This document shows positions 1,889-44,640 of a DNA stretch of 64,000 nt, one piece after another. Source of the DNA: Mobula birostris. Its lineage: Eukaryota. Numbering within the stretch: the stretch's first letter is position 1; each line of letters begins with the position of its first letter. The stretch covers positions 70,429,717-70,493,716 of the forward strand of contig NC_092380.1 of assembly GCF_030028105.1 (NCBI RefSeq), written 5' to 3'. Position numbers and translations under genes: made by a program. The notes beneath the pieces are model-generated. The model worked only from the letters and a program-made list of their open reading frames with translations, did not search any database and was not told the DNA's origin.

Positions 1889-1981
1889 CTATTGGAATTT
1901 GGGGATCCTGACTGGTTAAGAGCAGTTGGCAGGTTTGATCTCTGCTTTCCATTGGGTCACACTGACTGGTATCTACAGATG
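1889..1981 (-). CDS. Candidate internal cytoplasmic exon of the B7-H6-like gene (ASVDTSQCDPMESRDQTCQLLLTSQDPQIPI)
   Basis: Acceptor atctttttaaactag| and donor AG|gtaagtg; 93 nt, phase 1 to phase 1; open in the frame compatible with the TM exon. Confidence 0.55.
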
Positions 1982-2830
1982 CTAGTTTAAAAGATATTTA
2001 ATTTTATATATGAATCTAAGCTTTCTACACAATATATATAACGTATGAACACTTAATTCAGAGTGCAGGTTTTGAATTTTCACACCTTTCCACATTAAGC
2101 TATTCTGTATTTGTTGCAAATAACTACAAAATGTTCAAAGTAAATTTACTGTAAAAGTTCATACTGTATATGTCATCATATACTACCTGGAGAATTGTTT
2201 TCTTGCATACATTCAGAGTAGAGTGAAGAAAAACAGCAGCTATACACAATCAAAAACTGACAAACAACCAAAGTGCAAAAAAAAGATGCGCTGTGTAAAT
2301 AAAAAAAATAAGTAAACAAACAATACGGAGATCATGAGTAACATAGTCCTTGGAAGTGTCCATTGGGTGTGGAATCAGCTCAGAGTTGGCATGAGTGAGA
2401 TTATCTACCCTGGTTCACGAGGATATTTAAATTTTAAATATTTTAATATTTTAAGTCTTTCCACATCTTGCTTTGATAATTACTTGTAATGTATATTCAC
2501 ATAGAGAATTTTATTTCTTGATATAGAGCCAAGTTAATACTAAATGCTCTCTTTTAGTATATCAAGTGCTGTCCATATCTGAACTTAAAAGTTCTTTGTT
2601 TTAACACCAAACTATAATTTCTGTCCAGAAATTATATTTCCTGCATTTTTGTTACACTTGTACGTTCTGCATTTATGCAATTAGCGGAAATGCTAAAAAT
2701 CGGAGTTCTGGTGAAATTTATTTCTAAAAAACATTTAGATTAGTTTTTGCACATTTTGGTTCAAAAGAAGATTTATGTAAATATCCAATGATGGCTGCCT
2801 GCAAACGCTGCAGGTGCCAGGTCATTGCCA

Positions 2831-2880
2831 CTAGGGATCATGGGAAACGTGACTCGGCTTCAAAGTAGACTCTTCAATCG
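2831..2880 (-). CDS. Candidate alternative terminal exon C (AIEESTLKPSHVSHDP*)
   Basis: Acceptor ttcactgcag|CG ATT, phase 1. Paralogous to 5054-5101, with homology starting at the acceptor and continuing into the putative 3'UTR (to about 2690). Confidence 0.45.
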
Positions 2881-2977
2881 CTGCAGTGAATCAGAGTGAA
2901 GGAAACATCTTCAGCATCAGCAATGGGAAATGAGGCAGGCCTGATCAGAGAGTAACTGCTGTGTACATACATCTATT

Positions 2978-3825
2978 GATGCTTCTGGACACATCTTCAG
3001 TGATGTTCCTGGAATCATCGGGTGTTTCGGGTCTTTCAACATCACACAACCTCCTCCAGGTGACCCAGCCAGGGCTGATCAGACCCCAGCTTTTGTCTAG
3101 ATAGCTAGCTACTTATGACTCCATGGCTCCCCTCTTTTGAGCCACAGCCATCTTGAGGCCCTCTCTGCCGCATCGGTGGTACTGCGGATGGCTCTCCTCT
3201 TCCTCTCTCCCTCGATGCCCAAAATGCTGAAGGCTCTAACTAAAGAACGGGCTACGAATCTCCTACAACCAACCTCCACTGGGAGACACCTCGCTCTCCA
3301 TCCAGCCTGCTGACAGTTGCTGACCAGTCCTGCGTACTTGGAGAGCTTCCTTTCAAAGGCCTCCTCCAAGCTATCTTCCCATGGGACTGTCAGCTCCAGC
3401 AGCACCACTTACTTAGTAGACTCAGACACTAGGACAATGTCTGGTCGCAGGGTGGTGGCTGCTATATGGGTGGGGAACTTCAGCTGCCCTTTGAGGTCCA
3501 CCAACAGCTACCAGTCCCTTGCAAAGGTCAGAATGCCTGCAGATGTTCTTTTGGCAGGTATTGGCTGCTCCCCAGCTCTGACAAAGGCAATGGTCTGCTT
3601 GGAGGGTTGGGACCGCTTCGCCCGCTCAACTCCTGCGCTAACGGCTTCAGTGATGGTCTTCAGGACCTGATCATGCCTCCACCTGTACCGTCCCTCACCA
3701 AGTGCCCTTGCACAGCCGCTGAGGATGTGCTCCAGGGTTCCTCGCTTGGAGCACAGTGGGCACGCAGATGACTCTGCCTTGCCCCATGTGTGCAGGTTTG
3801 ATGGGCTTGGAAGCACATAATATTC
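2978..3825 (-). mobile_element. R2-Hero clade non-LTR retrotransposon, 3' fragment (REL endonuclease)
   Basis: Zinc finger CPLCSKRGTLEHILSGC and the motifs RPD...ELTVPWEDSLEEAFERKLSKY and RASRWLWLKR. Confidence 0.8.
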
Positions 3826-4496
3826 TTTCCCTGTTAGGACGTATCATGCTATGTGTGGTTTACACTTGAGTGCAGGGCTTGCTGTTTGTTTTACTGTAAA
3901 TGAAAAAAGTAAGTTATATAGTACAGAATTGCCACATTTATCAATTAAAAATGAGCTGTCAACACCATAGTGATGTCAAATTGTGTTGAATTACACACAA
4001 AAAATGGCAATTGAGCTGAAGTTATTTGCATATTGAAGTATTTGATCCCATTTCATGACTAGTGAGACATCTCCATGAAATTTGAACAACTTAAAGGATA
4101 TTGACACACTATTTTTGTGCATTTCACACATAAAGCACACTGAAGGTTTTCAATTAGATATTAAATGGTATTTTATTAGATCTAAAATAATACTTGATAA
4201 CTCTTCAGTGGAAATGTTTTCACCACCCAAGTGCAGTGAACAGGAAGCAAGTGCTGATTATTGTATTTGAATAGTAAGATGTTAAATGTTTTCATGACCA
4301 TTAATGATTGCTTTCGAACATCATGTTAACACTATTTAATTTGTACTAAATATACACAATATTAGCTAAATGTACAATGACTTTGTTTTAAAAAAATAGA
4401 ACCCAACACAACAATTTGATTTTTGAAACCTAAATAGAAAATTGTGAAATAGTGGTGTGCTAGTTATATTTACTATCTATATTAATAATTTCATTC

Positions 4497-4870
4497 GGGC
4501 TCGTCAGCTGTGGTTGGTAACTCATCTAGGAGAAGGAAAGCTCTGATCTCAATCCTCTGCTGTCTTGCAGCTACAGTATATCTGCTCACAGGAATGCTTT
4601 GGGAGTAAACCCCATGGGAAAAATCTGCAGCTGGAGTCCCTAAGGCAGTCCTGTATTGAGTTCAATGCTGACTGGCAACTCCTGCGATGCTGCTGCTGGT
4701 GCCAAACTGTATCAGTCTCTGCAGTTCCTTCAGTTTCATCAGATGTGTGGAGAGGGTGAGCTTGCTACATGGACAACAGCTTTCTCTCCGTATTGTACTG
4801 CCCGGGCTTGCACATCAAGACAACTAGCATGTAACATCCATGGTCAACCCTGACCAACAGAGACCTCATC
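4497..4870 (+). mobile_element. Unclassified retroposon fragment, probably RTE-related, inserted in module B
   Basis: Interrupts the otherwise continuous homology with 11640-11690 and ends in tcatcatc. Confidence 0.45.
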
Positions 4871-5053
4871 ATCAATGGAGGGAACATAGTATGAGTTACT
4901 TAAGTTCATCTAAAAGTCAGAGTACTGGTGAACTTTATCTCTTTAGAAAATATTAGGTTGTTTTTTTCACGTTTCGGTTCAAAAGGAGATCGATGTATAT
5001 ACTGTATCCAACGATGGCTGCCTGCAGACGCTGCAGCCGCCAGATCCTTGCCA

Positions 5054-5101
5054 CTAGGGATCATGGGAAGTGTGACCCAGCTCTAAAGTATTTTCTTCAA
5101 T
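5054..5101 (-). CDS. Candidate alternative terminal exon B (IEENTLELGHTSHDP* in phase 0; D* if spliced in phase 1)
   Basis: Acceptor tctcttgtgtcag|ATT. Paralog of exon C with the same stop position (CATGATCCCTAG). Confidence 0.4.
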   Translation of the reverse strand: MEENTLELGHTSHDP

Positions 5102-5619
5102 CTGACACAAGAGATTATGTCTGCTGGTTCATCTATAAATTCAGGTGAATTACAGAATTTTATCCAGTTTTAAATATAGACCAAAACATAATTTAACTGG
5201 GAATGTTGGTGTCTATTTTTGTGCCTGAATTACAAGTAATAATAATGTAATGACTTACTAGTCAGTACCAGTATAGACAATTGAATTGGTTGCCATCATG
5301 TTAGACTTACAGTGGGTGGATGAAATTGCCCATACAAGGTTGTATTTTGTTTCAATTCCTTTTCAGTTTTGATGAGTCTTTTAAGAAATCATTCTAGTGG
5401 TAGGTCAGATGTATTGTTGGAGGCTCAAACATTATTTTAGATACAATGTCACAAAGTAGAGAAAATCTGCAGATGCTGGGAATCCAAGCAACACACACAA
5501 AATGCTGGAGGAACTCAGCAGGCCAGGCAGCATCTATGGAAAAGAGTACAGTCGATATTTCAGGTAGAGACCCTTCGGCAGGGTCTGCCAAAGTCCTGCA
5601 ACTCTCTGCTACAACTTTC

Positions 5620-7890
5620 TGGCTTCTCAATGTCACATTACATTTACTACCTCATCCTGAATGCTGAGTGACTGAACCTTCTTGACCAGCCTCCCATGAG
5701 GGACTTTGTCAAATGCCTTATTGAAGTCCATGGAGACAACATCCACTGCCTTACCTTCATACATTTTCCTGATAACTTGCTCGAAATACTCTACAAGATT
5801 GGTTAGACATGACCTACCACGTACAAAGCTCTGCTGACTGTCCTTTATTAGTCCATGACTATCCAAATACTTATATGTCCAGACCCTAAGAATACGTTTT
5901 GCTAATTTTCCCACAACTAATGTCAGACTCACCGGTCTATAATTTCCTGTTTTCTGTTTAGAGCCTTTTTAAATAGTGAAACAATATTGGCTATTCTCCA
6001 ATCCTCTGATACCTCTCCTGTCACTAAGGATGCTTTCAATATTTCTGCTGGGGCTCCAGCAATTTCTGTACTTGCCTCCCTTATCTTCCAAGGGAACACC
6101 TTCAGTGTTGGGGATTTGTCCACCCTGATTTACCTCATGACAACATGCACCTTCTCCTCCGTAATCTGTACAGGGTCCATGAAGTTGAAGCTGCTTTGCC
6201 TCACATCTATAGACTTTGTATCCATCTCCAAAGTAAAAATAGATGCAAAGAATGCATTTAAGATCTCCCCCATCTGCTTTGGCTCCACACTTGGATTACT
6301 ATTCTAGTCTTCCAGAGGACCAATTTTGTCCCTCGCAATCCTTTTGTTCTTAACATATCTGTAGAATCCCTTAGGATTCTCTGTCACCTTGTCTGCTAGA
6401 GCAACTTCATGCCTTCTTTTAGCCTTCCCGATTTCTTTCTTAAGTGTTTTCTTGCATTTCTTGTACTCCCTTAAGCACCTCATTTGTTCCTACTTGCCTA
6501 TACCTGCTATGCATCTTTTTCTCTTAACCAATATCTCTTGAAAACCAAGGTTCTCTACGCTTGCTATATTTTACCTTTTATTCTGACTGCCATGTACAAG
6601 CTTTGCACTCTCAAAATTTTGCTTTTGAAGGCCTGCCACTTTCCAAATACACCTTTGCCAGAAAACAGCCTGTCCCAATCCACACTTGCTGGATGATTTC
6701 TAATATCATCAAGATTGGCCTTTCTCCAATTTAGAATCTCAACCTGCAGACCAGCCCTGTCTCTTTGCACATTTCCTTTGAAAATAATGGCATTGTAGTC
6801 ACTGGATGCAAACCCTACACAAACCTCTGTGACCTGACTTGTCTGATTCCCTAATAGCAGATCCAGTATTGTATGCTCTGTCATTCGGACTTCTACATAC
6901 TGATGAAGAAAACTTCCCAGAACACGTTTGACAAATTATCCCATCCAGTCCTTTTACGGTAAGGGTTTCCCAATCAATATGTGGAAAGTTAAAGTCACCT
7001 ACTATAACAACTTTATGTTTCTTGTAACAGTCTGCAATCTCTTTACACATTTGGTCCACTAAATCCCGAGCACTGCTGGGTTGTCTGTAATATAGCCCCA
7101 CTAACCTGATTATAGCTTTATTTCTCAGTTCCGCTCATAAAACCTCACTAGTCGAGTACTCCAGTCTGTCCTGACGGAGCACTGCTGAGACATCTTCCCT
7201 GACTAATAATTTCACCACTTCTCCTTTAATCCCACCCCCCACTCTGTCACATCTAAAACAATACTACCCCAGAATACTGAGTTGCCAATCCTGCCCCTCC
7301 TGCAACCAGGTTTCACTAATGACTGCAATGTCGTAATTCCAGGTGATGATCCATGCTCTGGGCTCCTGTGATATTTCTTGTGTTGAAATATGTGCTCAGG
7401 ACACTAGTGGCAGCACGCTCAAACTTTTGATTGCTGACTTTGTCTGAGGTCTTACGAACATCTGCCTCCAGAACCTCTCCACTAACTGTTCTGGTACTCT
7501 GATTTCCATTGCCCTGCATTTCTAGTTTAAACCCCACCACGCAGCATGAGCAAACTTTCCCACTAGGATATTAGTCTCCCTCCTGTTCAAATGCAAACCA
7601 TTCCTTCTGTACAGGTCGCACCTTCCCCTGGAAGTAGCCAATGATCCAAAGATCTTATGTCCATCCTCTACACCTACTCCATAGCACATATTAAGTTATA
7701 TAATATTCCTAATTCCAGTCTCAGAAGTGCATGGCATGGGTAGAAATCCTGAGATCACAGTCCTGGAGATTCTGCCCTTTAGCTTAGCTCCTAACTCCCT
7801 GAACTCCCTATGCAGAACCTCATCACTCATCCTACCCATGTCATTAGTACCTACAGGGACCATGACCTCTGACTGTTCACCCTCCTTATT
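5620..7890 (-). mobile_element. Decayed CR1 LINE (ORF1 remnant, endonuclease and 5' part of RT)
   Basis: Fragments VVIVGDFNFPHIDW, ILDLLLGN, GRSCLTNL and MDFNKAFDKVPHGRL. Confidence 0.85.
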
Positions 7891-7969
7891 TCTCTATGAG
7901 AAATCAACTGTTTCAAGATTTTGCATTTCCATGGGAAGTTTTAAAGAAGAGGAGTACAGCCTGGGATTT

Positions 7970-8458
7970 TGTCAGGGCACTGGAGCAGGGATCTAATCAT
8001 AGACCCAGTACTGTACAAACAGTGATATTAACTGTGTAACAAATCCCAAGGTGCAAACAAAGTCAGCATCAAAGTTCAGGCAGAGATCAAAAGACACAGA
8101 GAAATCCAAAAAATGCAGAATAGGGAAACAGGCAGAATTGATATTCAGACAGACAGAGTATAGATACGAATGCTGGAAAGGCTCAGGAAAATTAACTAGC
8201 ACTATCTGGCAACAAACAACTGAAACCACAGGACTGAATTACACGGAGCAATAAACAGAGAGGCAGATGATAGGTGGAGCACAATGAGGCACAGGTGGCA
8301 GTAATACAGGTAATAATGAGAAACAGACGGAGTACTCAGTAATACAGGGGCCAGAGTAGAGCAGGAGTGGCGACAGGAACACATGGCAATACAAAACCAC
8401 AGACTGACAGCTAGGGGGAAACACACAAAAAGACAGAGTTCAACTGGAGGTACTGACA
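7970..8458. mobile_element. Solo LTR with 5-bp TSD
   Basis: TGTCAG...CTGACA termini flanked by GATTT (7965-7969 and 8459-8463). Confidence 0.8.
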
Positions 8459-9394
8459 GATTTATGCTTTGCATTTAATCAGTTACTCTGTTTCTTGATT
8501 CCATTTAGTCAGTTACTTCCTTTCTTCTTTTCTAAATCTGTTGCATGTTTACTGTGTCTTAATATGTTACTTTGTTACTTGTTTCCCCATATTATTGGTT
8601 TAGGGTGACCCATTTCATACTGGCCGTATGAAATTTGAGTTGAGATTTAGTAGAAATTTGGGCAACTTTATTCTGGATATCGGATGGCCACATTTCAGAG
8701 AAAATTTAGCACTTGGGGACCAATTCTTGTAGTACTATTGTATTTTCTAAATATACAGTGGCGAATCAGGAGCAGTGCATTTGTATCTCCCTGCATTACA
8801 GAATAGCAAAGTGTTGGATGGTGATTTGTGGTGGGAGATCGTGTGGTACATTTCTGGGGATGGTGTTCGAATTTGCACACTGGATTAACAGTCAGATTGC
8901 TAAATTTGTATGAAGACTCCTTACATCATCAAGGAAGGGGAGCCACTGACATTGATCCTTTTGACAAGGAAAAGACTGTGAGGGTATTATCTGGCTTCTC
9001 GGGTTTTTGTACTCTGTTTTGGGGGAGCTGGCAGGGAGCAGTCTTCCAGCCAAACCCTGACCCAGAGTATGGTAACAGCCTTAAAGAGACTTGAGCCTCA
9101 ATAGCCTTGGTGGAGTGAATGTTTTAGGGGCTGGTCTATACCTGTGTACCATTTGTATAATTAGAATGTCCTGACTCTTAGTGATTTCCCCAGCTGACAG
9201 TTGGTGTAGCTGGTATGTTGAGTACAGGAACAAGGTGCAAGGTGGATGGCAAGTGTGAGAAGGAACAGTGTCCTTGGACAGCTGTGTCTATGCCAAATGG
9301 TGTTGTGAAGCTGGGCACTGGTTGGATGCTGAATGGTACTTCCTGGATATGCAGTCCCAAGCCTACCTGTGGTTCCCATAGGGTGGTGTGATTA

Positions 9395-10480
9395 GACAAT
9401 AGACAATAGGCAATAGGTGCAGAAGTAGACTATTCGGCCCTTCGAGCCTGCACCGCCATTCTGAGATCATGGTTGATCATCTACTATCAATACCCAGTTC
9501 CTGCTTTGTCCCCATAACCCTTGATTCCCCTATCCATAAAATACCCATCTAGCTCCTTCTTGAAAGCATCCAGAGAATTGGCCTCCACTGCCTTCTGAGG
9601 CAGCACGTTCCACACCTCCACAACTCTCTGGGAGAAGAAGTTCCTCCTCAACTCTGTCCTAAATGACCTACCCCTTATTCTTAAACCATGCCCTCTGGTA
9701 CTGGACTCTCCCAGCATCTGAAACATATTTCCTGCCTCTATCTTGTCCAATCCCTTAATAATCTTATATGTCTCAATCGGATCCTCCCTCAATCTCCTTA
9801 ATTCCAGCATGTACAAGCCCAGTCTCTCTAACCTCTCTGTGTAAGACAGTCTGGACATCCCAGGAATTAAGCTAGTGAACCTACGCTGCACCTCCTCCAC
9901 AGCCAGGATGCCCTTCCTTAACCCTGGAAACCAAAACTGCACACAATACTCCAGGTGTGGTCTCACCAGGGCCCTATACAAATGCAAAAGGATTTCTTTG
10001 CTCTTGTACTCAATTCCCTTTGTAATAAAGGCCAACATTCCATTAGCCTTCTTCACTGCCTGCTGCACTTGCTCATTCACCTTCAGAGACTGATGAACAA
10101 GTACTCCTAGATCTCTTAGTATTTCTCCCTTACCTAACTCCACACCGTTCAGATAATAATCTGCCTTCCTGTTCTGGTCCCAAAGGAATAACCTCACACT
10201 TATTCACATTAAACGCCATCTGTCAAGTTTCTGCCCAGTCACCCAGCCTATCCAAATCACCTTGAATTCTCCTAACATCCTCATCACATGACACTGCAAC
10301 CCAGCTTAGTATCATCAGCAAACTTGCTGAAGTTATTCACAATGCCTTCCTCTAAACCATTGACGTAAATCGTAAACAGCTGTGGTCCCAATATAGAGCC
10401 CTGTGGTACCCCACTAGTCACCACCTGCCATTCCGAGAAACACCCATTCACTGCTACCCTTTGCTTTCTATCTGCCAACC
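9395..10480 (-). mobile_element. CR1 LINE 3' fragment
   Basis: GVPQGSILGP, KFADDTKL and LVRPHLEYCVQFW; 3' tail cctattgcctattgtctattgtc. Confidence 0.9.
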
Positions 10481-11099
10481 ATTGATATGTGGTGCCATTT
10501 GTATGCCACCCCAGTTACCTGGATGAGCACCTTGCCCATGCTGGTCAGTAAGAAAGCTATGACGAAGGAAGGATATTTTGAATGATAGTCTTTCTCAGCA
10601 TAGCATGACCAGACTGTCCCAGGAACTGATTTTGATGGATTACCTGTTCACAAGGGAAGGTGGCACCTGTCCTGTTGTTGGTTAAGAAAGCAGCACCTAC
10701 ATTCCTGATGGGTTGGTGAACATCACTCACCTGGTAGATCATACCTCAGAGTCCATGGATAAAAGTAAATGGGGTCCAGCTTATTGGCTATTACACTCCA
10801 GGGTGGGGCTGGTGAACTTTTGGGGCACAGGGGGGCTGATGGACTCCTATAGCACACTGGAAGTGACTACTGGGTTTACAGTTCTGAGTATTGTGCCTTT
10901 GTGGTTTATATATAAGTTAGGAGTCCGTGAGAGTCATACTAGTCTGAGGGTTGGATCATCACATTTGGAACTTTCGAAGGATGCTGTGTCCTGTGGGGGT
11001 GAGCCTTATTCTGATTGTCGAAAGTCGATTCCATTGTGATTGGTTAGTTTAGAAGCTGCAGCAGCTTCTCCCAATGGATAACTGTCTGGTGTCCAGTTT

Positions 11100-11690
11100 G
11101 AAATATCCTGGATGTATAAAATAGCACATTGAAGGGGTGAATATTGTGTAGTCTCACACACAGAAGATGATAATTCAGCTGAGGTTATTTGCATATTGAA
11201 CTGTTTGATCCCATTTGCTGAGTGGTGAGATATTCCCTTGAAATAGGTGTAAACAACTTAAAGGATATCCAAAAACATTTTATGTGCATTTCATACATAA
11301 AACAGACTAAAGGCTTGCAATTAGATTATAATCGGTATTTTATTAGATCTAAAATAATATTTGATAACTGTTTAGTGGGAAGGTTTTCTCCACCCAAGTG
11401 TAGTAAACAGGAAGCAAGTATTGAAAATTGTATTTGCATAGTAAAATATTGAATGTTTTCATCACCATTATTGATTACTTTCCAACATTATGTTGACTTT
11501 ATTTAATTTGTATTAAGTTACGCAATATTAGCTGAATGTACTGTGTCTTGTTTTAAAAAAATAGAACCAGACAAAATAAATGTTCATCCAAAGCTTAACA
11601 GAGAAATGTGAAATAGTGGGGTGTTATTTATATCTACCATCTGATAATTTAATGAAGGGAACACTGAGTTATTCAAGTTTGTCTTTAATA
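11100..11690 (-). repeat. Duplicated 3'-end module A (3'UTR-like segment, paralog of 3960-4900)
   Basis: Shared blocks gttatttgcatattg, aacaacttaaaggata, ggtattttattagatctaaaataa and caggaagcaagt. Minus-strand AATAAA at 11339-11344. Confidence 0.75.
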
Positions 11691-11704
11691 TGAAGGTAGA
11701 CTTA

Positions 11705-12375
11705 TGAAGGTAGATATGTTGTGTTGAGAAACACAGTGTGGCCTCCTCTATATCAATGATAGCTGATGTAGATTGGAGGTTTGTTCTGACTGCCACAACA
11801 GGCTGGTTTTCCTGGCGGCCTACTCCCCATTCCCATTTCAACATGTTGATTAATGGCCTCCTCTACTGCCTCAATGAGGCCAGTCTAAGCTTGGAGGAGC
11901 AACACCTCATATTCCATCCGAGGGGTCTCCAGCCTGAGAACATGAACTTGAATTCCCTGACTTCCACTAATTTCTCCTCGTCTCCTTCTCTTTGCTTGCA
12001 TTCCCCAATCTGACTCCTCACTTATCCCATTTCTTCTCCTCACCTCCCTCTGGTGCCCGTCCTCCTCCTTCTCCCGTGATCCATTATCCTTCTTTCCTTC
12101 TTTACCTTTTCCACGTATCATCTCCCAGATTCACACTTCACTGATCCACTAAACTTCCCCCCTCACCTGGCATCTTTTATTTATCACCTGCTAGCTTCTA
12201 TTCCTTCTCTTCCCCACTTATTCTAGCTTCTATCCCCTCTCTTTCCAGTCCTGATAAGTCATTCTTGTTCCAAACATCAGCTGTTTATTCTTCTGCATGG
12301 TTGCTGTGTGGCCTGCTGAGTTCCTTCAGCATTTTGTGTGTGTTACTCTGGATTTTCAGCATCTCCAGAATCTCT
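11705..12375 (+). mobile_element. Penelope-like element 3' fragment (GIY-YIG end plus terminal repeat)
   Basis: Translates to LEEQHLIFH...LQPENMN; degenerate terminal repeat ending gctgagttccttcagcattttgtgtg. Confidence 0.75.
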
Positions 12376-12379
12376 TGTA

Positions 12380-12845
12380 TCTCTGATGGGAATGTTTGGA
12401 CTCAGCAGTAGGAGACGGATAAGTTAAGTAAATGAGTGAAAACAAGGGAAATGATGTTTAATGTGGGCACTTGTGAAATCATGCACTTTGACAAGAGGAA
12501 TCAAAAGGAAGGCTCTGATTTAAATAGAGATTGTTTATAACTGGGGGAGTATAGAGGGATCCAGGTGTTCCTGAGCACAAACAGCATGAAGTTAGCAGGC
12601 GGGTGCAACAAGAAGTGAGAAAGGCAAGTGGCATATCGGCCTTTGTTACCAAGAAGTTTAGAAACACAGACTATTATGACAGAATATAAAGAATTGGTGA
12701 GGCTACACCTGGAAGACTGAAAAAAGACTTCCTAGCATTGGAGGTAGCCCAGAAGAGATTGACTATGTGAATATCTGGAATGAAAGGGTTTCTTATTACA
12801 AATGGTTAAAGCAGTTCAATCTTTATTCTTTGGAGTGCAAAAGAA
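12380..12845 (+). mobile_element. Old CR1 RT fragment
   Basis: Degenerate match to the FNVxxCEIMHF...VRLHLE region. Confidence 0.6.
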
Positions 12846-13122
12846 TATGGCGCGGCACAAAACTCAGAAAGCACAAAATCAGAAGGCAGTAAGTCATCCT
12901 TGACCCCAAGGCACTGCTTATGAAGTAACAAAGTAAAAGTAATTATTGATTATTGTGTCTGAATTTAAAATACAAAATGATGTGTCCACAATTAATGTAT
13001 ACATTCCAATATTCACCAGCAACTTTAATGTGTGTTCCAATATTTCAGATAGGTTTACCTAATTTAATTAGTGTTTAATTATCAGAATACTAGTGACTTT
13101 TGTTTAAATCACTAAGATGGCA

Positions 13123-13163
13123 TCAGTAACCCGTTAATAGTTCATTCAAAACCGAATTGAAAA
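13123..13163 (-). CDS. Candidate proximal terminal exon (VFNSVLNELLTGY*)
   Basis: Branch and acceptor gattaacattttcatcacag|TT, phase 1, about 230 nt after the TM exon donor. No independent support. Confidence 0.35.
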
Positions 13164-13391
13164 CTGTGATGAAAATGTTAATCCGTGAGAATCATAATAA
13201 GACTAGTGGATGATATTGCAGAAGAGAGAAAAAAAGTCTTCTAATTCTGATTAAATTTTAAGAAATTATTATAATTTCAACTTTGAGTTAAGCTCCAGAT
13301 AACAAATAGATTTTAATAAATTATCAACAGATAATTAAGCATTTTATTTTTCATACTCCAGTCAACCTTTATAAACCGAGAAAAGCGTTAC

Positions 13392-13493
13392 CTTTAGATA
13401 TTTTCTTCCAGATACAAATTCCAAAACCCAGAACAGAAAGTAGTATGATAATGCCAAAGATAATTCCAGCAATCAGCTTACTTTGTTCTTGTT
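13392..13493 (-). CDS. Transmembrane exon of the B7-H6-like gene (EQEQSKLIAGIIFGIIILLSVLGFGICIWKKISK)
   Basis: Acceptor cttgttttaacag|, donor AAAG|gtaacg; 102 nt, phase 1-1; hydrophobic helix followed by basic stop-transfer residues. Confidence 0.85.
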
Positions 13494-13982
13494 CTGTTAA
13501 AACAAGCATGTTTTTGAAAACTTGAAAAATGAATAAACTATGTAATTTACAATATTCATGAGAATGTGAACTTATTTGACTTATCAGTTTGATATATCCC
13601 CTGCATGAATTAGTGGTACAAATTATATGCATTATATTTATTTTCAAGATGTGAAATAGCTGAAGATTGACACCTTTATGAATGAATGTTACATGTGTAT
13701 TTGGGCTAATTCTAATTGTCTCTGTACTACATTTTTATCAGCTGAAGCATATACCTAAAAATATTTCTATCTCTTTGGATTTTTCAATTAGAGGCAAATT
13801 AGAATCAATCTCAAATTACTCATTTTCACATCTTCTGTATAAACAGTGTGATTGCTGGTTGAGCTGATAATAATATTTGCTCCACGGTCAATCTGCATAT
13901 CTGAGGATTATCAGGGAAGCTTGAATATTGCGGGGCAACATATTAGAAATAAATTCTGTATACTTTTCCAATTGGATCTTAC

Positions 13983-14279
13983 CTTTAGCCATGTTGCTTG
14001 CCAGTGTAAAATTTCCATGGAACTCTTTGTGCTTCACTGTACAGATGTACTTGGCAGAACTACTCGCCATCGGTTCTACTCTTACTTTAGTGATAAGACT
14101 AAATGTCCCACTTTGGTCCATAACGATATCATCAATAGACTGATCTTTTGAAATATCTTCCACTTTTTCATCTAGTACTTTTAACCATCTGACTGTAATT
14201 TCCTTTGGATAAAATTCCTTCACTTCACATATTGCAAAGTTCTCCTCTTTTTGCATAAATACGTTGACTTTTGGTTTGA
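13983..14279 (-). CDS. Ig C1-set domain exon of the B7-H6-like gene
   Basis: CEVKEFYPKEITVRW...GTFSLITKV...YICTVKH. Acceptor ctcttccacag|, donor AAAG|gtaaga; 297 nt, phase 1-1. Confidence 0.92.
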
Positions 14280-15099
14280 CTGTGGAAGAGAGAACAGAAT
14301 AAGTTCATGATTAATATATATTATCAAGTACTCTAGTTAGAGCTTACTGACATCAGCAATGAGGGACCAGAAAACTATATTCTATGCATTCAGGCTTTAA
14401 GCTGTTGTTCTTTTTGTTTATTTACATATTTCTTACTTTTTTTTACTTTAACTGTTAAAAATGCGGTGGAGTGTCTACGTCATTTAATTATCATTCAACC
14501 ATACATGAGTACCCATGAAAACAGCAAAATGAAACAGTATTCCTCTGGGATCAAGGCACAAAACACAATACAAACAGTCATGCACAACACAATGCTCATA
14601 TTGCACATATGGATAGCAGTAAACATACAGTCACACAAAAATATATATAGAGAGAGCTCACGTCCCTGAGTGACATGTTCTATAAATAGTGTTGCTGGTA
14701 CGGACAGGCAGTTCTCAGCAGTCCAAGGATGGGAGGGGCCAATCCCCAAATACAACAATACAATCGTTATAGAGAAAGGTATTAATTAAAAAGAATGAAC
14801 ATGCATTTATGTAGACGCTCTAACGCACTGCAATTTCCCAAGGAATTCTGAATTGAAATTATTCACTATTGGAAAGCATTCTGATGATTGCACACTTAGA
14901 TCTACCTTAAGTATGCAAAAAAGAGAGGGCCTGACATTATTGAACGGAATTGAATTGAATTGACTTTTTTTTCTTACATCCTTCACATGAGTAAAAATCT
15001 TTACGTTACGTCTCCGTCTGAATGTACTATGTGCAATCATATTAATTTATAATAATTTATAATAAATAGAACAGTCAATGTAACATAGATATACACTCA

Positions 15100-15440
15100 G
15101 ATCAGTGTGAGTTAATCAGCCTGATGGCCTGGTGGAAGAAGCTGTCTCGGAGCCTGTTGGTCCTGGCTTTTGTGCTCTGGTACCATTTCCTGGATAATAG
15201 CAGCTGGAATAGATTGTGGTTGGGGTGACTCGGGTCCCCAATGATCCTTTTGGCCCTTTTTTCACATCTGTCTTTGTAAGTGTCCTGAATCATGGCAAGT
15301 TCACAACTACAGATGTGCTGGGCTGTCCACACCATTCTTTGCAGAATCCTGTGATTAAGAGAGATACAATTCCCATACCAGGCAGTGATGCAGCCAGTCA
15401 GGATGCTCTCAAATGTGCCCTTATAGAAAGTTCTTAGGAT
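15100..15440 (-). mobile_element. Rex1/Babar LINE 3' fragment
   Basis: ESILTGCITAWYGNC...DPSHPNHNLF...RLRDSFFHQAIRLINS. Confidence 0.8.
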
Positions 15441-15630
15441 CTGTGGGCCCATACCAAACTTCCTCAATTGTTGCATGTCAGTGTGAAAAGGTGATTCAAT
15501 TCTAAAGTTACAAAATTGGAATTCCACTCATTAGCCAAAGCTCACATTTGAACAGATCTAACTGGCCCATGACCTCCAGAACAAGCACCAGATATGAAGC
15601 CTTCAGTGTGTGTCATTGCAGAAAGCCATC

Positions 15631-15636
15631 TTTATT
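15631..15636 (-). terminator. Candidate poly(A) signal for the V-only isoform
   Basis: Minus-strand AATAAA about 270 nt downstream of the TGA at 15903-15905. Confidence 0.45.
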
Positions 15637-15902
15637 TGAGTTGCCACAGTAGGTAAAAGGCTGGCTCCAAGGCCAGATAGTTGTGACACACAATCCAAGC
15701 ACATGCAATCACCATAAAAATATAACGTATGTGCTTCACGTGAAGCATGATGGAGTGGGTCAGTGGCCTACTGGACTAAAACATCCATCACTTGAACTGT
15801 TCTACAAGATATGACTGGGTGTCAAAATTAGTGATGGTCTACTGCACACTACACAAGATTGTTACTTTTTAGAGCCAAACTTTATCAAATGCAACATAAC
15901 AA

Positions 15903-16003
15903 TCAGTTGAGGGAGAAGAACAAGAAGATCAAAGGAATGACAAGAAGGAAGAGGAGAAAGAAGAAAAGAGCAACACAGACAGGAATCCCTTTCCTTGGGA
16001 TGC
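15903..16003 (-). CDS. Candidate alternative terminal exon after IgV: hydrophobic tailless anchor (GIPRKGIPVCVALFFFLLFLLVIPLIFLFFSLN*)
   Basis: Branch-like ctgat and acceptor tcattctgcacag|GC, phase 1, in frame with the IgV donor across a 171-nt intron. Confidence 0.6.
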
Positions 16004-16174
16004 CTGTGCAGAATGAATCTGACTGATATCAGTAATTGTAACTCTTATTCCCTATTCACAGACACTTCTGGTAGCAGGCAACATGGGATCTGGTTGTTTA
16101 CGTTGCAAAGTCATCAGCAAATAAACATGACTAATAATGTTATTAATGAGCAAAGTGAAAGATCCTTTTCTTAC

Positions 16175-16513
16175 CTGAAACAAGCATCTTTGAAGTCTTT
16201 TCACCTTTATTTGGGGTTAGGTAAACAGTGCAGGTATAATTTCCTTCTTCATTAAGTTGTACTTTCGGGAGGTAAAGTGAAGCATTTCCATTCTGTAATG
16301 CATCTTCAAAAATCTGTGCACCTCTTCTGTTGGGTTGATGAATCCCTCCATTAAATATATACAGTTCCTTCTGAGATGTTTGAGATTTATAAGACCATTG
16401 AACAGCTACATGTCTGAGATCATGTTCTGGTTTACTGTATATGCATTTTAGAAGAACATCTTCATTTACTGAAACTTCCAGTGGAGAGGAAAATATCTCC
16501 AATTTCAAACCAC
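16175..16513 (-). CDS. NCR3LG1: Ig V-set domain exon; NCR3LG1/B7-H6-like (family-level call)
   Basis: LKC...VQW...GNASLYLPKVQLNEEGNYTCTVYLTPNKG parallels human B7-H6 [28 protein letters not shown] (recalled, not aligned computationally). Acceptor ttattttaaag|, donor TCAG|gtaaga; 339 nt, phase 1-1. Orthology versus a tapasin-like or other B7 paralog is not proven. Confidence 0.8.
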
Positions 16514-17054
16514 CTTTAAAATAAGTTAAAGTAGTAAGTCATTGATTAGCTTTAATATCACAAATAGACAGAAGAATATATGATGAATGCTTAATCCATT
16601 TGTTGTTCAAACATGGTAGATTTGTCTGGATAGTGAAATTACGAAGGTTCAGGACAAGGCAGCTAACTAGTTACAAAATTGGTTGGGTGGAAGAAGTCAG
16701 AGGTCGCCAGTGGAGACTAACAAACAATCTGCAGAAAGAACTCAGAGGATCGAGCAGTATCTGTGGTAGAAAAGGAACTGTCAACATCTTGGGTCTAAGC
16801 CCTATATCAGGAGGGATGTTGTGGATGGCTGTGTTTCAGAATGGAGGCCTCTGACCAGTGTGAATGAAATCCAATCACCCTCTGATTTTCTTTCTGCTGT
16901 TCTGCATCGGCAGATATTGAAAAGGGACTATGGCTGAGCAGTAGGAGGAATTGTAATAAAAATATTCTGCTTTCCTTATGTTACATAGGTGTTAGAACTT
17001 GTCAACGTGAAAAACTTTTACATTGTATAAAATACATGGAACTACCTTCAGGGC

Positions 17055-22596: not shown

Positions 22597-22648
22597 CTGA
22601 ATATAAAATGGAAGACATCACAAGGGCGGACAGACTTAAGATTCCCAT
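22597..22648 (-). CDS. Proximal leader (signal peptide) exon (MGILSLSALVMSSILYS)
   Basis: ATG at 22648, 52 nt, donor TCAG|gtaaga in phase 1, compatible with the IgV acceptor. Confidence 0.75.
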
Positions 22649-22716
22649 TATTAAAACAGAAGATTTTCTTTCCTGTGCTGCCGGTTCTTGCAGATCTTTA
22701 GTTTCAAAAAGTTCTT

Positions 22717-23860: not shown

Positions 23861-23861
23861 A

Positions 23862-30200: not shown

Positions 30201-32570
30201 GTATATGTAAGATAATGGAAAGGATGATAACAAAAAGGTTATCATATGAGCTTGAGAAAAGGGGAATGCTGGCAAGTTATCAGAGTGGTTTTAGAAAGGG
30301 AGGGAATTCCATGGAGTCAGTGATTATGTTAGAGACTGAAATAAGGAAGGCCCAGGCAAATAGAGAGTCAGTAGTGGCAGTGTTCTTTGACATTGAAAAG
30401 CCGATGATATGATGTGGAAGGAAAGATTATTAATTAAACTGCACAAGATGGGGGTTGGTGGGAGAGTTTTTAATTGGATTAAAGATTTTTTGTTTGGTAG
30501 AAAAATTCAAGTTCGGATTGGATCAGAATTATCAAAACAGTACATAGTGGAAAATGGCACACCTCAAGGTAGTGTGATTAGCCCATTACTGTTCATGATT
30601 ATGATCAATGATGTCTTCACAAAGGTACCAGTGGATATAGGTAGGTCATTGTTTGCGGATGATGGGGCCTTGTGGAAAAGAGGCAGGAACATGGACCATA
30701 TAATCAGGAAACTACAAGAAGCAATTGATGAAGTGGTGGAGTGGGGTTATGATTGGGATGTAGATTTTCAGTAGACAAAACTCAAACTGTATTTTTTATC
30801 AGGAAAAGGGTTGAGGTAGGGAAGAAGTTAAGGATGTATGGGGTTGAATTAGAAAGGGTTGCATCATTTAAATTTCTGGGAGCTATATTTGATTCACGAT
30901 TAACATGGGCAGACCATATTAGGAAAGTTGAGGAGAAATGTAAAAAAGTAACAAATGTGATGAGATGTTTGACTGGTAGGGAATGGGGAGCAAGTTGTTC
31001 AGCTTTGAAGAGAATGTATGTGGCTTTAGTAAGATCTGTACTGGATTATGGAAATATAGTATATGGATCAGCAGCTAGGTCTCTTATAAGGAAACTGGAT
31101 GTGATTCAGGCTCAGGCCTTGAGAGTGTGCAGTGGGGCTTTTAAAACGTCACCAGTGTCAGCCCTACAGGTAGAAATGGGAATAATGCCTTTGGAACTAA
31201 GAAGGATGCAACTGATGGCAAACTACTTTGCTAACTTGCAGGGGCACAATGATTCTCACCCTACTAAAGGAGTGTTGCAGGAGTGCTGGGAAAATGGGAG
31301 GTTTCAGAGGGATACCTTTAGTCGGGTAGGGAATGATATTGCGAAAGAATGTGGAGTATTTGATCTGAGGATAAGTCCTTCAGTAGTTTATCCGGTTGTA
31401 GCTCCATGGAAGCTTGTATGGCCTGACATAGACTGGCATTTGTTAGAGGTAAAAAAGATATAAAACAGATTTGGTAAATGCATTTAACTGTCATGTGATG
31501 GAAAAGCATAGAGATTATACTCACATTTATACAGATGGTGCGAAGGAACCTGCAACAGGAGTGATAGGGTTTGGGGTGGTCATACCAGCAAAAGAAATTG
31601 GAATCAGCAGAATAACATCTAATAAGTTAGGAGTGTTTACAGTGGAGATGCTGGCGGTGTTGGTTGCGTTGCAATGGGTGCAGAAAGCCAGACAAGTCAA
31701 AGCATTGATATGTTCAGATTCATCCTCCGTTCTAGCAAGTTTAAGGTCTTTTCACACAAACAGTCGGCAAGATGTACTTTATGAAGTCCTTCAGTTAGTT
31801 ACAAGGATTGCAAATCAGGGAGGTCAGGTAAAATTTCTATGGGTTCCAGCACATGTAGGGGTGAAGGGGAATGAGAGGGTGGATGAGTTGGCAAAGAGGG
31901 CGTTAAAGAAAGAAAATGTGGAAATGCACATTAGTATCAGTAAAGCAGAGGTTAAGTGTGTAATCTGGGGAAAAAGTCAACCGAATGTGGCAAGAAAGAT
32001 GGGACAGGGAGGGGAAAGGGTGGCATTTATATCAAATACAAAAGAGTGTTGCAGTTACTAGGCTAGGTAATGGGAACAGAAGAGAGGAAATTGTGTGGAC
32101 TAGGTTAAGGCTGGGGCATTGTGCATTAAACAAAACATTGAAAATGATAGGGAAACACCAGACAGGATTGTGTGAGGAATGTCAGGAAGAGGAGTCAGTA
32201 GAACATGTAGTTCTGAGTTGCAGGAAGTATGGGATACAGAGAGAGATGATGAGAAATAAATTAAGGGAGTTGGGGATGCAGGAATTCACATTAAAAGGGT
32301 TGCTGGGCATGGGTGAGAGAGCACAAGTCCGGGTATTTTTAGCATTTTTAAGGGGTACAGGGGTTTTTTATAGAATATGACGAATAAACAGGAATAGGAT
32401 ACTAGGATGGTCAAAGATGGGAGGGTGAAGTGCGCGCGTGTGTGTGTACATGCGCGCGATTGAGTGAAGGGATTTAGAATGTATGTCTAGTGCACATTCT
32501 GGAGCAGAGGGTGGCGGTAATGCACCATTAAGCTGGATGCCAACCGCCGTAAAACAAGATACAGACAGAC
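27286..32570 (+). mobile_element. Full-length Nimb/I-clade LINE with 15-bp TSD; ORF1 (3 zinc knuckles) and ORF2 (APE-RT-RNase H-CCHC), disrupted
   Basis: TSD AGTGTGGGCTGCTGG at 27271-27285 and 32571-32585. Motifs CYNCQRFGHVAKNC, QWNARSL, SDHYP, LFADD, YTDGAK and CEECQEEESVEHVVLSC. One in-frame stop (29428-29430) and several frameshifts. Confidence 0.92.
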
Positions 32571-32879
32571 AGTGTGGGCTGCTGGTTTGTCTTGTCAGTC
32601 CCCCCGGAGCAACCTGCTGGTGGAAGGCTAGAACAGCCAATTGCCATCTTTAGGCTGTGTTGGGGAACCATCTCCTCATGGAGCCTTGCTGTCAGTAGTC
32701 GGAGTTGTCTTTGTGGTATGGATTTGGCTGTTTCCTGGGCCAGCTGAGTGGCTGCCAGCCACTCCAAGCTAGGTAGGGATCCGGCTGTTTCTGTAGCCAG
32801 CTGAGGTTGCTGGCTGAACTGAGACTTGGAGCTACCCCAGAGCAGAGATGGAACTGTCTGTTGTTCTTTGGTGTTTGTC

Positions 32880-33280
32880 TCCTCTTGTCCTTGCCTCTGT
32901 GGGGTAAGTCAGGCCGTCTTGCTGTTGCCCTGCGGGGGATCATGTCTTAGTTTGTCTCGTCCTCACCTCCATGGGGTAAGTCAGGCCGTCTTGCCATTGC
33001 CCCGCAGGGGGTCGTGTCTTGTCTTGTCCTTGCCTCTGTGGGTAAGTAAGGCCGTCTTGCTGTTGCCCCGTGGGAGGTCATGTCTTGTCTTGTCCTTGCC
33101 TCTGTGGGGTAAGTCAGGCTGTCTTGCTGTTGCCCCGTGGGGGGGTCATGTCTTGTCCTTCCCTTTGTGGGGTAAGTCAGGCTGTCTTGCCGTTGCCCTG
33201 CAGGGGGGGTACATGTCTTGTCTTTGCCTCTGTTGGGTAAGTCTGGCGGTCCTGCCGTTACCCAACAGGTGGACCTGTCC
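32880..33280 (+). repeat. About 6 imperfect tandem units (about 55-70 bp) inside the solo LTR
   Basis: Recurrent ctctgtggggtaagtcaggccgtcttgc. Confidence 0.85.
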
Positions 33281-34970: not shown

Positions 34971-34999
34971 CCAGTAACTGTAAGTCTGAGGTTATAGAG

Positions 35000-40810: not shown

Positions 40811-41485
40811 CAGGGATGAAGGGTGCAAGCTTTAATGGGAATACTTCACCCTTCACCAATTAAAATAGGGAAATCACTTGGAGTCCAGTCACTTTGGGAG
40901 TAGGCTAAAGCCAGGATCAAATCTAGAAGGAGTATAATACCTCTAGTCCAACCAACCAAGCTGTCAAAGCAAGCACCTCCTACTCCATCTGGGTAGAGTT
41001 TGCAGGTACCACATTGGCCTCAACAATACCTCAGAAATACAGGGGTTGCAAGTTAGCTTCAACCCCGAAGAATTGCCAAAGAAGGGGTAAGAACGGGCAG
41101 AGAGGGGAGAGGAATTCATCAAGACAAGCTACAGCAAACAAAAACCACTTCACAATCCAATCTGGAATCATGACAAATTTTGACTGGTGTCAACCAAATC
41201 CGTAAGTGGCCCAATTATGTAAATTTAACAAACATAAATGAAACAATAACCTGAACATCCTGTTTCAGAGGCGGAAAACATTTTTATGGGTGGGGCACTC
41301 TAGTTAGGGCGTACTTTAAAATGTATAATCATACCACAAAAGAAATATCACAAACAAGAGAAAATCTGCAGATGCTGGAAATCCAAGTAACACACAAATT
41401 GCTGGAGGTACTCAGCAGGCCAGGCAGCAACCATGGAAAAGAATACAGTCGACGCTCCTGCTGAATGGTCTCGGCCCGAAACATC

Positions 41486-43846
41486 ACAAGGTCACAAGAC
41501 AAAGGAGCAGAAGTAGGCCATTCAGCCCATCGAGTCTGCTCCGCAGCTCCCCCATGAGCTAAACTATTCACCCATCTAGTTCCAATTTCCGGCTTTCTCC
41601 CCATATCCCTTGATACCCTGACTAATTAGATACCTGTCAATCTCCTCCTTAAACACCCTCAATGATCGGGCCTCCACAGCTGTATGTGGCAACGAGTTCC
41701 ACAAATCCACAACCCTCTGGCTAAAAAACTTCTCCTCATCTCTGTTTTAACTGGGTACCCTCTAATTCTAAGACTATGGAATCTTGTCCTGGACTCACCC
41801 ACCAAGGGAAACAACCTTTCCACATCTATTCTGTCCAACCCTTTCAATATTCGAAATGTTTCTATGAGATCCCCTCTCATTCTTCTATACTCTAATGAAC
41901 ACAGTCCAAGAGCCGACAAACGCTCCTCATATGTTAGCCCCTGCATTCCAGGAACTATCCTCGTAAATCTTCTCTCAACTCTCTCCAACATCAGTACTTT
42001 GGGGCCCAAAACTGCACACAGTATTCCAAATGAGGTCTCACTAATGCCCCATAGAGCCTCATCAACACCTCCTTACTCTTATACACTATTCCTCTTGAAA
42101 TGAATGCCAACATAGCATTCGCTTTCCTTACCGCCGATCCAACTTGGTGGTTAACCTTTAGGGTATCCTGCACGAGGACCCCCAAGTCCCTCTGCACTTC
42201 CGATTTTTGAATTTTCTCCCCATCTAAATAATAATCTGCCTGATTATTTCTTCTTCCGAAATGTACAACCGTACATTTGTCAACGTTGTATCTCATCTGC
42301 CATTTCTTTGCCCACTCTCCTAGACTGACTAAGTCTCTCTGCAACCTTTCCGTTTCTTCAACATTTCCTGCTGTTCCACCTATCTTGGTGTCATCCGCAA
42401 ACTTAGCCACAAAACCATTTAATCCATAATCCAAGTCATCGATATACATTGTAAAAAGAAGCGGCCCCAACACCGACCCCTGCGGAACACCACTAGTAAC
42501 CGGCAACCAATCAGAATAGGATCCCTTTATTCCCACCCTTTGCTTTCTGCCTATCAGCCAATGCTCCACCCATTTCAATATCTTTCCTATAATTCCATGG
42601 GCTCTCATCTTATTAAGCAGCCTCATATGCAGCACCTTATCGAAGGCCTTTTGAAAATCCAAATACACAACATCGACAGCCTCTCCCTTGTCAATCTTAT
42701 TCGAGATTACCTCAAAAAATTCCAATAGGTTGGTGAGGCAGGATCTTCCCTTCATGAAACCATGCTGGCTTCGGCCTATCTTGTCATGCACCTCGAGGTA
42801 TTTCATAACCTCGTCCTTGAGGATTGACTCCAATATCTTTCCAACTACTGATGTCAGACTAATAGGTCTGTAATTTTCTTTTTGCTGCCTCCTTCCTTTC
42901 TTAAATAGCGGAACTACATTTGCGACCTTCCAGTCCTCCGGAACCATGCCAGAGTCTATTGATTCCTGGAAGATCATTTCCAATGCTTCCACAATCTCCA
43001 AAGCCACCTCTTTCAGAACCCTTGGGTGCACCTCATCTGGACCGGGAGACTTAACTATTCTTAGTCCACTTAGCTTCCCAAGCACATTCTCTCTAGTAAT
43101 CTTGACTGTACCTAATTCTATACCCTGATACCTCAGGCTATCAGGTATATTACTGATGTCTTCCACTGTGAAGACTGATGCAAAATACTCATTCAGTTCC
43201 TCCACCATCTCTTTGTTATCCATTATAATTTCTCCAGCATCATTTTCAATCAGTCCCATATCTACCCTTGTCATTCTTTTACTCTTCATATATTTTTAAA
43301 AAAACTCTTAGTATCGTTTTTTATGTTAATCGCCAACTTCCTTTCATAATTCATCTTTTCTTTCCTAGTGACTTCCTTAGTTTCCTTCTGTAAGTTTTTA
43401 AAAGTCTTGCAGTCCTCATTTTTCCCACTAATTTTTGCTTCCTTGTACACCGTTTCTTTTGCTTTTATTTTTGCCTTAATCTCTCTCGTTAGCCACATTT
43501 GTGCCATTTTTCCAGTCACGATTTTCTTTTTACTTGGAATATATTTTTCCTGCATTTTCCTTATTTCTTGTAGGAATTTCATCCAATTCTGCTCTGCTGT
43601 CCCTCCATTTAACTTACTTTTCCAATCGACTTGGGCCAGTTCCTCTCTCATACCACTGTAATTTCCCCTGTTCCACTGAAATATCGATACACCTGATACC
43701 AGCTTCTCCTTTTCAAATTTGAAACTGAACTCAATCATATTATGATCACTACTTCCAAGGGGTTCCTTTACCTCCAGCTCCCTAATCACCTCAGGTTCGT
43801 TACACAGCACCCAATCCAAAACAGCCGGCCCCCTGGTGGGCTTCTG
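41486..43846 (-). mobile_element. Young CR1 LINE, 5'-truncated, 432-aa open RT segment
   Basis: ORFs 43286-43819, 41991-43289 and 41659-42009 with KFADDTK. Inserted into a Penelope terminal-repeat hairpin. Confidence 0.92.
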
Positions 43847-44039
43847 GACTGCACCTTAATCCCTAACCGGGTTGGCCTGCTGAGTTCCTCCAGCATTTTA
43901 TGTGTATTGCCGCAAAATAAATAACCCATCGGCGTTTTACTTGGAAGAATTGACAATAAGCACATTTCAAAAGTTTTAAGCTTCTTTGTCCAATTCTCGA
44001 GAATGATCTTTTAAAGGAAACCTTAGCCAGACTCCATTT

Positions 44040-44640
44040 TATGCCCCGCCGTTTAAACCAGTTTTACCCAGAGGAGAGGAGTAACCGCACTCTGACACCT
44101 TACCTGCCGCAGGGGTGAGCCACACAACAATCAGAAACAACACCAGGGGTCCCGAAGCCCCTGACCACCGGTATCGCCGCGACCTCGCCCAAGCGCGGCT
44201 GGAAGAAAAACCCAGCTCCGCCACCATTTCAGATGGAAAAACAACTGTTTTCACTTTCGTATTCTTCACGTGGTTTGTTCGGGTAAGTACCCATCCTATC
44301 ATAGAATATGTTTTAATTTAACCATACTGTCTTGACAACCGTTGTCTCCACAAGACTGGCCGTATACATTGCATTGCTCTTCATGTTGTAAGGACGTATC
44401 GAAAACTGAGGCTGCAGTCTACAGAGATGGGCGGAAAGCGGTGTCTGGGAAACGAGCTGCAGGGTGACGGTGACCCTGCTCATCCTTGGAGAGAGAGAAT
44501 CATTCAGCGCTTCAGGAGGCGGCGACTGCTGCCGATCCAGCGCCTCTCATGCTCGACCCTTTACCAAAATAAAACCTGTGACCAGAGCCCGCCAGGGACC
44601 CCTGCGTTCCGTGATGGGAATTTTTAACATTAGCTTGCCC
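44040..44640. promoter_or_regulatory. CpG-rich promoter-like island with ISRE (44247-44259) and E-box CACGTG (44267-44272)
   Basis: CpG density is visibly higher than in the flanks. GTTTTCACTTTCG lies about 20-30 nt upstream of the distal leader ATG. Confidence 0.65.
44104..44227 (-). CDS. Distal leader (signal peptide) exon (MVAELGFSSSRAWARSRRYRWSGASGPLVLFLIVVWLTPAA)
   Basis: Kozak gaaATGG; basic n-region, hydrophobic core and small-residue end; donor GCAG|gtaagg in phase 1; lies in CpG-rich unique DNA. Confidence 0.7.

Follow-up and report, generated by a model that had tools for sequence, protein, structure and literature searches.

Human B7-H6 (NCR3LG1) is the ligand of NKp30, its structure has been solved (PDB 3PV6, 4ZSO and 6YJP), and its cytoplasmic tail is described as gag-like. 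Here we describe a related gene of the manta ray Mobula birostris, which lies on the minus strand of a 64,000-nt stretch of contig NC_092380.1 (the window; all positions are counted from its first nucleotide). The manta gene resembles human B7-H6 in its ectodomain of one IgV and one IgC1 domain and in its type I membrane anchor. The two proteins share a low sequence identity, and the tetrapod proteins stand on long branches in the phylogenetic tree. Unlike the human tail, to which it is unrelated in sequence, the tail of the manta gene consists of acidic repeat exons and a predicted degenerate Ig-like domain.

More closely related are elasmobranch proteins annotated as 'NCR3LG1-like' or 'uncharacterized' (Scyliorhinus canicula XP_038661991.1; Mobula hypostoma LOC134353700 and LOC134353701), which fall into a common clade (100/99) with the manta gene and have the leader, the exon order and the tail modules in common with it. 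Multiple exon-skipping isoforms are annotated for these relatives; a short-tail read-through form found in the manta is absent from the RefSeq models that were looked at. The 'long' B7-H6-like genes (M. hypostoma LOC134353704 and LOC134353705; Hemitrygon XP_072905585-591) have a related front of V, C1 and transmembrane (TM) exons, and their first post-membrane domain is homologous to the tail domain of the manta gene. They differ from it in forming a separate clade, in having a leader of the type encountered at 44.1 kb of the window, and in the number of tail Ig domains (5-10 versus one). Butyrophilins (V-C-TM with a cytoplasmic B30.2 domain) likewise combine a B7-related ectodomain with a folded tail domain, which is an analogy of layout only. 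The manta protein, in contrast, has no B30.2 domain, and its sole butyrophilin-like match was marginal (E = 6.5e-4).

Exon map and relationship to B7-H6

It is probable that the window covers the 5' part of a B7-H6 (NCR3LG1)-like gene from a tandem elasmobranch family, that a second leader at 44.1 kb (leader 2), a hydrophobic open reading frame (ORF) near 16 kb and two sequence blocks at 2.7-5.1 kb are not exons of this gene, and that its isoforms arise by skipping of tail exons or of the C1 exon and by read-through of the TM exon. In a HMMER search of the full library, the V exon matched XP_072128570.1, an 'uncharacterized protein [Mobula birostris]' of 708 residues, at 100% identity. With tblastn, this protein matched five exons on the minus strand of the window, all of them 100% identical: the leader (span 22595-22648), V, C1, TM and the first tail exon (span 1890-1982, 31 codons). 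Its residues 295-708 (414 residues) had no tblastn match within the window and the gene range on record for the locus is 55.6 kb, so the gene continues past the left end of the window. Only one isoform is annotated in M. birostris. The first tail exon is kept in paralogues of M. hypostoma and Hemitrygon.

The exon ends, taken from spliced contigs and from the sequence, show one domain per exon and phase 1 at every junction, and a signal peptide followed by a single TM segment behind the C domain, both recognized in the sequence by eye, indicates a type I layout. Five of the nine modules in the preliminary description of this locus are backed by the annotated protein, and V, C1 and TM additionally by spliced contigs. 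The product would be a type I membrane protein with a V-C1 ectodomain of the B7-H6 type, presumably shown to an NKp30-type receptor. Its long cytoplasmic tail, encoded to the left of the window, would be made up of acidic repeat exons of about 26 residues and one degenerate Ig-like domain.

Comparison of V-C1 with all PDB sequences placed human B7-H6 first, with both domains aligned (E = 4e-22, 82 bits), and CD276 (E = 1e-13, 55 bits) and TAPBPR (E = 1e-12, 52 bits) next. The V domain alone also had its best single-domain score with B7-H6 (50 bits, versus 33 bits for single-V CD276); the 57 bits reached by four-Ig CD276 are a sum across two V domains. The C domain alone matched classical C1 domains in a generic way. 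Among the relatives, those of catshark and basking shark have NCR3LG1-like names, and NCR3LG1 of a wallaby was within the top 30 library matches for the V exon. Among solved structures, B7-H6 ranks clearly first across V plus C. In a maximum-likelihood tree of V-C1, the manta gene groups with shark and ray proteins, the NCR3LG1-like protein of the catshark among them (100/99), and the 'long' proteins form a second clade (also 100/99); the tree holds no other B7 families, and strict orthology to B7-H6 is beyond its scope. The earlier assignment of the locus to a B7-H6-like V-C1-TM gene is borne out by the Pfam domains, the matches to solved structures, the score of the V domain and the clade in the tree.

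To the left of the window, residues 377-518 of XP_072128570.1 form a conserved tail segment of 142 residues, present in one to seven copies behind the TM segment of relatives from sharks, rays and a newt (up to seven copies in Heterodontus). In alignment the segment resembles a C1 domain, except that the canonical cysteine pair is missing and an insertion has been gained. Its predicted fold is an Ig-like sandwich (predicted local distance difference test score, pLDDT, 91.6), and the top PDB matches are all Ig domains. By this structure prediction, the segment is a degenerate Ig-like domain located behind the membrane anchor.

A perfect core motif of an interferon-stimulated response element (ISRE) lies about 70 nt 5' of the leader-1 ATG, and a near-copy lies about 30 nt ahead of the leader-2 ATG. 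A looser ISRE pattern matched four times in the 64 kb, versus 1.8 matches expected, which is not significant; the argument is therefore the position of the core and not the count. Induction of the manta B7-H6-like gene by interferon would be plausible on the basis of this motif.

Spliced RNA, isoforms and candidate exons

Spliced joints between V and C1 (14279|16175) and between C1 and TM (13493|13983), both with GT..AG on the minus strand, were present in three sequencing runs from two organisms (X1, X2 and X3) and fix the exon ends. The runs are taken as RNA because both introns are removed exactly at GT..AG. X1 is from the species of the window and has zero mismatches; X3 is from another organism. 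Reads were mapped over positions 11001-17000, and all statements on joints refer to the joints listed. Expression was low and found in some samples only.

One contig of X1 (486 nt, zero mismatches) runs from C1 through TM and then unbroken past the TM donor to 13292, where it ends 20 nt past an ATTAAA. Beside the Ig exons, this read-through is the only intronic coverage in X1. In X3, the same stretch (13292-13391) has about 1% of the exon depth, equal to other introns. The read-through, seen in one contig of a depth of about 6, is likely to represent a candidate short-tail isoform with intronic polyadenylation that is not in the RefSeq model.

The RefSeq models of M. hypostoma comprise 11 + 4 + 4 isoforms of three short paralogues, which differ by the inclusion of acidic repeat exons of about 26 residues, by two alternative C-termini, by an acceptor shift of one residue and by a V-TM form without C1. 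All 19 isoforms start with leader 1. The modular tail exons of these models lie outside the window. Skipping of C1 in M. birostris was not among the joints listed and is known only from the model of the sister species. Isoform diversity of the manta gene may have two sources, namely the skipping of phase-1 tail exons and sometimes of C1, as annotated in the sister species, and transcription through the TM donor as far as a poly(A) site in the intron, from which a nearly tail-less form would result, as suggested by the one contig.

The preliminary description had envisaged a combinatorial set of isoforms and an architecture not described before. The first idea stands with respect to the tail variants and the C1-less V-TM form in the M. 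hypostoma models and to the short-tail read-through in the manta, and finds no support with respect to the second leader, a V-only ending and extra terminal exons. As to novelty, the layout is already contained in RefSeq predictions; no description of it was found in the literature searched, including papers citing the 2012 work on B7H6 and NKp30.

Several cytoplasmic exons had also been proposed between the TM exon and the left end of the window. The exon at 1889-1981 is real, with 100% identity to the annotated protein, and the two blocks at 2.7-5.1 kb match no tail of the family. Even at relaxed thresholds, neither block (2693-2879 and 4910-5102) showed similarity to the tails of nine family proteins, and a relaxed tblastn search of these nine tails against positions 1-13392 gave the 1889-1981 exon as the only match. 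The best-conserved part of the two blocks lies after the stop, and the phase-1 frame of copy A closes after a single codon because the ORF common to both copies differs in phase relative to the nearest AG. A third copy of the block was looked for and not found. The two blocks are low-copy intronic duplicates. A second pair of low-copy blocks (about 80% identical) is located in the same intron at 3980-4486 and 11143-11653; contigs on the copy at 11.1-11.6 kb, from two runs, both end at 11082.

The hydrophobic ORF at 15903-16003 had been taken for an alternative V-only ending with a TM or glycosylphosphatidylinositol (GPI) anchor. No junction from V to 16003 was among the joints listed, and the depth of the stretch was 0 in X1 and X2 and about 5 in X3, versus 862 on the exons. 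In X3, a contig (15874-16096) runs colinearly across the putative acceptor and diverges by 5.4%, as compared with 6.5% for a neighbouring intron contig and 2-3% on the V and C1 exons. In a CT-rich tract such as this, codons for leucine and phenylalanine arise by composition alone. Short V-only proteins (62-196 residues) were absent from a collection of 5.8 billion proteins. With depth and divergence at intron level, no listed junction, and such ORFs being commoner on the opposite strand, the stretch was rejected both as a TM and as a GPI anchor, and the V-only ending is left without support.

Phase 1 is the rule for exons of the Ig superfamily, and the preliminary description had emphasized that all its modules join in this phase. 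The features are present with phases as described, except that copy A reads one codon before TGA, and the criterion does not discriminate. The 11.4-kb intron between TM and the first tail exon contains 450 formal internal candidates (AG, phase-1 frame, GTA or GTG), versus about 205 in shuffled sequences, and 526 terminal ones in phase 1 with 10 codons or more, versus about 394 in shuffles. Hydrophobic phase-1 terminal candidates across the region 1889-44260 number 10 on the gene strand versus 28 on the opposite strand. Since phase-1 compatibility was the selection criterion, is not rarer than chance and leaves hundreds of formal candidates, it is no evidence by itself.

The leader exon at 44.1 kb

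The interpretation of leader 2 as a chance ORF was rejected in view of its homology to the leaders of the long subfamily; the exon is intact. It is identical in 38 of 41 residues to the N-terminus of M. hypostoma LOC134353705 and, together with the upstream stretch bearing the ISRE-like motif, matches N-termini of the Hemitrygon family (P0187, E = 2e-21; P0040, E = 5e-21). DNA similarity between the two leaders was looked for and not found, and the interval from 44.1 to 22.7 kb contains no V or C1 exon of the long type. The stretch 43850-44450 is represented in five runs by a fraction of about 0.14-0.22, which corresponds to roughly one exon (about 0.22 in X8, X9 and X10). None of these five is among the runs that contain the V-C1-TM stretch, and in X9 the depth is 0 on each of these three exons. 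In X1 and X3, on the other hand, sequence upstream of V is present (97 and 222 nt, respectively), with almost no leader-2 words. Leader 2 belongs by descent to the long subfamily and is not joined to the Ig exons of the manta gene in the available RNA. The proposal of two alternative leaders for one gene is not supported, in view of the close match of leader 2 to the leader of a gene of another subfamily, the zero depth of V, C1 and TM in X9, and the use of leader 1 in all 19 isoforms of M. hypostoma.

The model of the preliminary description, in which one gene has two alternative leaders, either C1-TM or a V-only hydrophobic ending (TM or GPI), and several terminal exons at 1.9-13.4 kb, has become highly improbable as a whole. 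Its modules are all formally compatible in phase 1, leader 2 is intact and has an ISRE-like motif, and the blocks at 2.7 and 5.1 kb begin near an AG, with the end of copy B about 25 nt past an AATAAA. These features are outweighed by the hundreds of formal candidates and by the M. hypostoma isoforms, none of which (0 of 19) ends in a proposed peptide and all of which begin with leader 1. The model is also at odds with the missing V-only proteins, the lack of a V-16003 joint among those listed, the intron-like depth and divergence at that site, the runs that hold leader 2 without V, the single phase-1 codon of copy A and the lack of any tail resembling the blocks. The reading preferred here, a gene that uses leader 1 and none of the look-alike modules, has its own weak points. 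The runs are recorded as guessed RNA only; 41 joints and 765 loose ends lie outside those listed; the RNA is represented by assembled contigs with a depth of about 5-8 in the species of the window, from which rare junctions would drop out; and the leader-2 words in the runs could have their source in a paralogous, nearly identical exon at some other genomic site. Moreover, the end of the X1 contig, at exactly 22695, directly follows an AG and leaves room for an upstream exon. The same contig end would suit an arrangement of two leaders in series, with the leader-1 exon as an internal phase 1-1 exon of 99 nt (22597-22695) behind leader 2 and an upstream promoter as the result, and the 47 nt ahead of the leader-1 ATG indeed contain no stop in the frame of a phase-1 entry. 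An open frame and a length that is a multiple of 3 have a chance of about 15%, however, the acceptor is weak, X9 combines leader 2 with zero depth on V, X1 and X3 have V without leader-2 words, and the RefSeq protein begins at the leader-1 ATG although leader 2 in the model would give a longer open frame. Such a series is scarcely credible.

Among the accounts of leader 2 itself, there is somewhat less than an even chance that it is an orphan, namely a promoter-plus-leader remnant of a long-subfamily gene between two short genes that is perhaps transcribed but unproductive, or else that its RNA words come from a near-identical paralogous exon. Leader 2 has the manta gene on one side and, on the other, the 3' end of a short paralogue lying upstream (62.8 kb), the 21 kb below it contain LINE (long interspersed nuclear element) copies and no Ig exon, and the family forms a tandem, fast-changing cluster. 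A remnant is less easily reconciled with an intact ORF, donor and ISRE-like motif and with 93% identity to the leader of the sister species, which is no more diverged than the working exons of the family. This state of preservation, including the strong donor and the 5' stretch conserved with Hemitrygon, would be expected if leader 2 were the working first exon of a long-subfamily gene located further downstream on the same strand, with the short gene inside its first intron. The recovery of just about one exon of the 601-nt stretch in the runs, which suggests splicing, and the lack of long-type V or C1 exons at 44.1-22.7 kb would also agree with it. We nevertheless regard this arrangement as unlikely, given that a first intron of at least 60 kb enclosing a same-strand gene with compatible acceptors would be unusual, that the Hemitrygon gene with this type of leader extends over 52.5 kb and encloses no other called gene, and that the locus table of XP_072128570.1 lists no other gene. 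There is a very slight chance that leader 2 with its own ISRE-like promoter serves as a shared first exon, which would be spliced either to the short gene or to a long-subfamily V exon downstream. Formally, the route from leader 2 into the manta gene is free, since neither the frame nor the phase of the 99-nt leader-1 exon or of the V exon stands in its way. A single interferon-responsive promoter would then, if this holds, serve two B7-H6-like subfamilies through the choice of acceptor.

Features of the window and implications

The features discussed above are compiled in the table. The window as a whole is rich in transposable elements (TE) and contains several LINE copies with endonuclease, reverse-transcriptase and RNase H ORFs, among them a near-complete LINE at 27200-32400 (plus strand) with zinc-knuckle, endonuclease, reverse-transcriptase and RNase H ORFs over several frames. 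A short element at 12201-12400, for which the contig depths in each of the four runs add up to about 50,000-140,000, is presumably a very abundant repeat similar to a short interspersed nuclear element (SINE); an Rfam search of the whole window, including this element, gave no match. Further repeats are a GC-rich tandem array of units of about 70 bp that are about 80% alike (32876-33279) and a direct duplication of about 440 bp with 95% identity (45578-46020 and 46509-46949).

Features of the 64,000-nt window, with positions counted from its first nucleotide
Feature	Position	Strand	Evidence and remarks
First cytoplasmic exon	1889-1981	-	31 codons, phase 1-1; residues 264-294 of XP_072128570.1 at 100%
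Block copy B, proposed terminal exon	2693-2879	-	79% identical to 4910-5102; 16 codons in phase 1; ends about 25 nt after AATAAA; unsupported
Block copy A, proposed terminal exon	4910-5102	-	in phase 1, one codon, then TGA; unsupported
TM-donor read-through (candidate)	13292-13391	-	7 added codons; stop 13369-13371; AATAAA 13343-13348; ATTAAA 13312-13317; contig end 13292
TM exon	13392-13493	-	phase 1-1; 23 hydrophobic residues, then WKKISK; tblastn; C1-TM joint in three runs
IgC1 exon	13983-14279	-	phase 1-1; Pfam C1-set, 5e-11; both joints, GT..AG ends
Proposed hydrophobic terminal exon	15903-16003	-	ORF behind an AG in a CT-rich intronic tract; rejected
IgV exon	16175-16513	-	phase 1-1; Pfam V-set, 2.7e-13; residues 19-130 of XP_072128570.1 at 100%; V-C1 joint in X1, X2 and X3
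Leader-1 exon	22597-22695	-	coding part 22597-22648 (17 codons + 1 base), phase-1 donor; residues 1-18 at 100% (tblastn)
5' limit of leader-1 exon	22695	-	end of X1 contig, immediately after AG; contig has 97 (+2) nt upstream of V
ISRE core GAAAGTGAAACT	22718-22729	-	about 70 nt 5' of leader-1 ATG and about 25 nt 5' of X1 contig end; second GAAACT 12 nt further on
Leader 2	44104-44227	-	ATG at 44227, donor after 44104; intact leader exon of the long B7-H6-like subfamily; GAAAGTGAAAAC about 30 nt 5' of ATG
Last acidic tail module and read-through stop of the upstream tandem paralogue (separate gene)	62842-62966	-	tblastn to the C-terminus of Hemitrygon XP_072906167.1 (P0006), E = 9e-8

The exon map of this manta B7-H6-like gene is now established: its real parts are a single leader, the V, C1 and TM exons, the first tail exon, an ISRE and, probably, a short-tail form with its own poly(A) site. 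They are thereby set apart from the look-alikes that arise by the hundreds in TE-rich introns. The presence of a long-subfamily leader upstream of a short-subfamily gene bears on birth-and-death evolution in the cluster. The elasmobranch relatives of B7-H6 emerge as a fast-evolving tandem cluster of two subfamilies, both with predicted Ig-like domains behind the membrane anchor, whose tails are shuffled by exon skipping.

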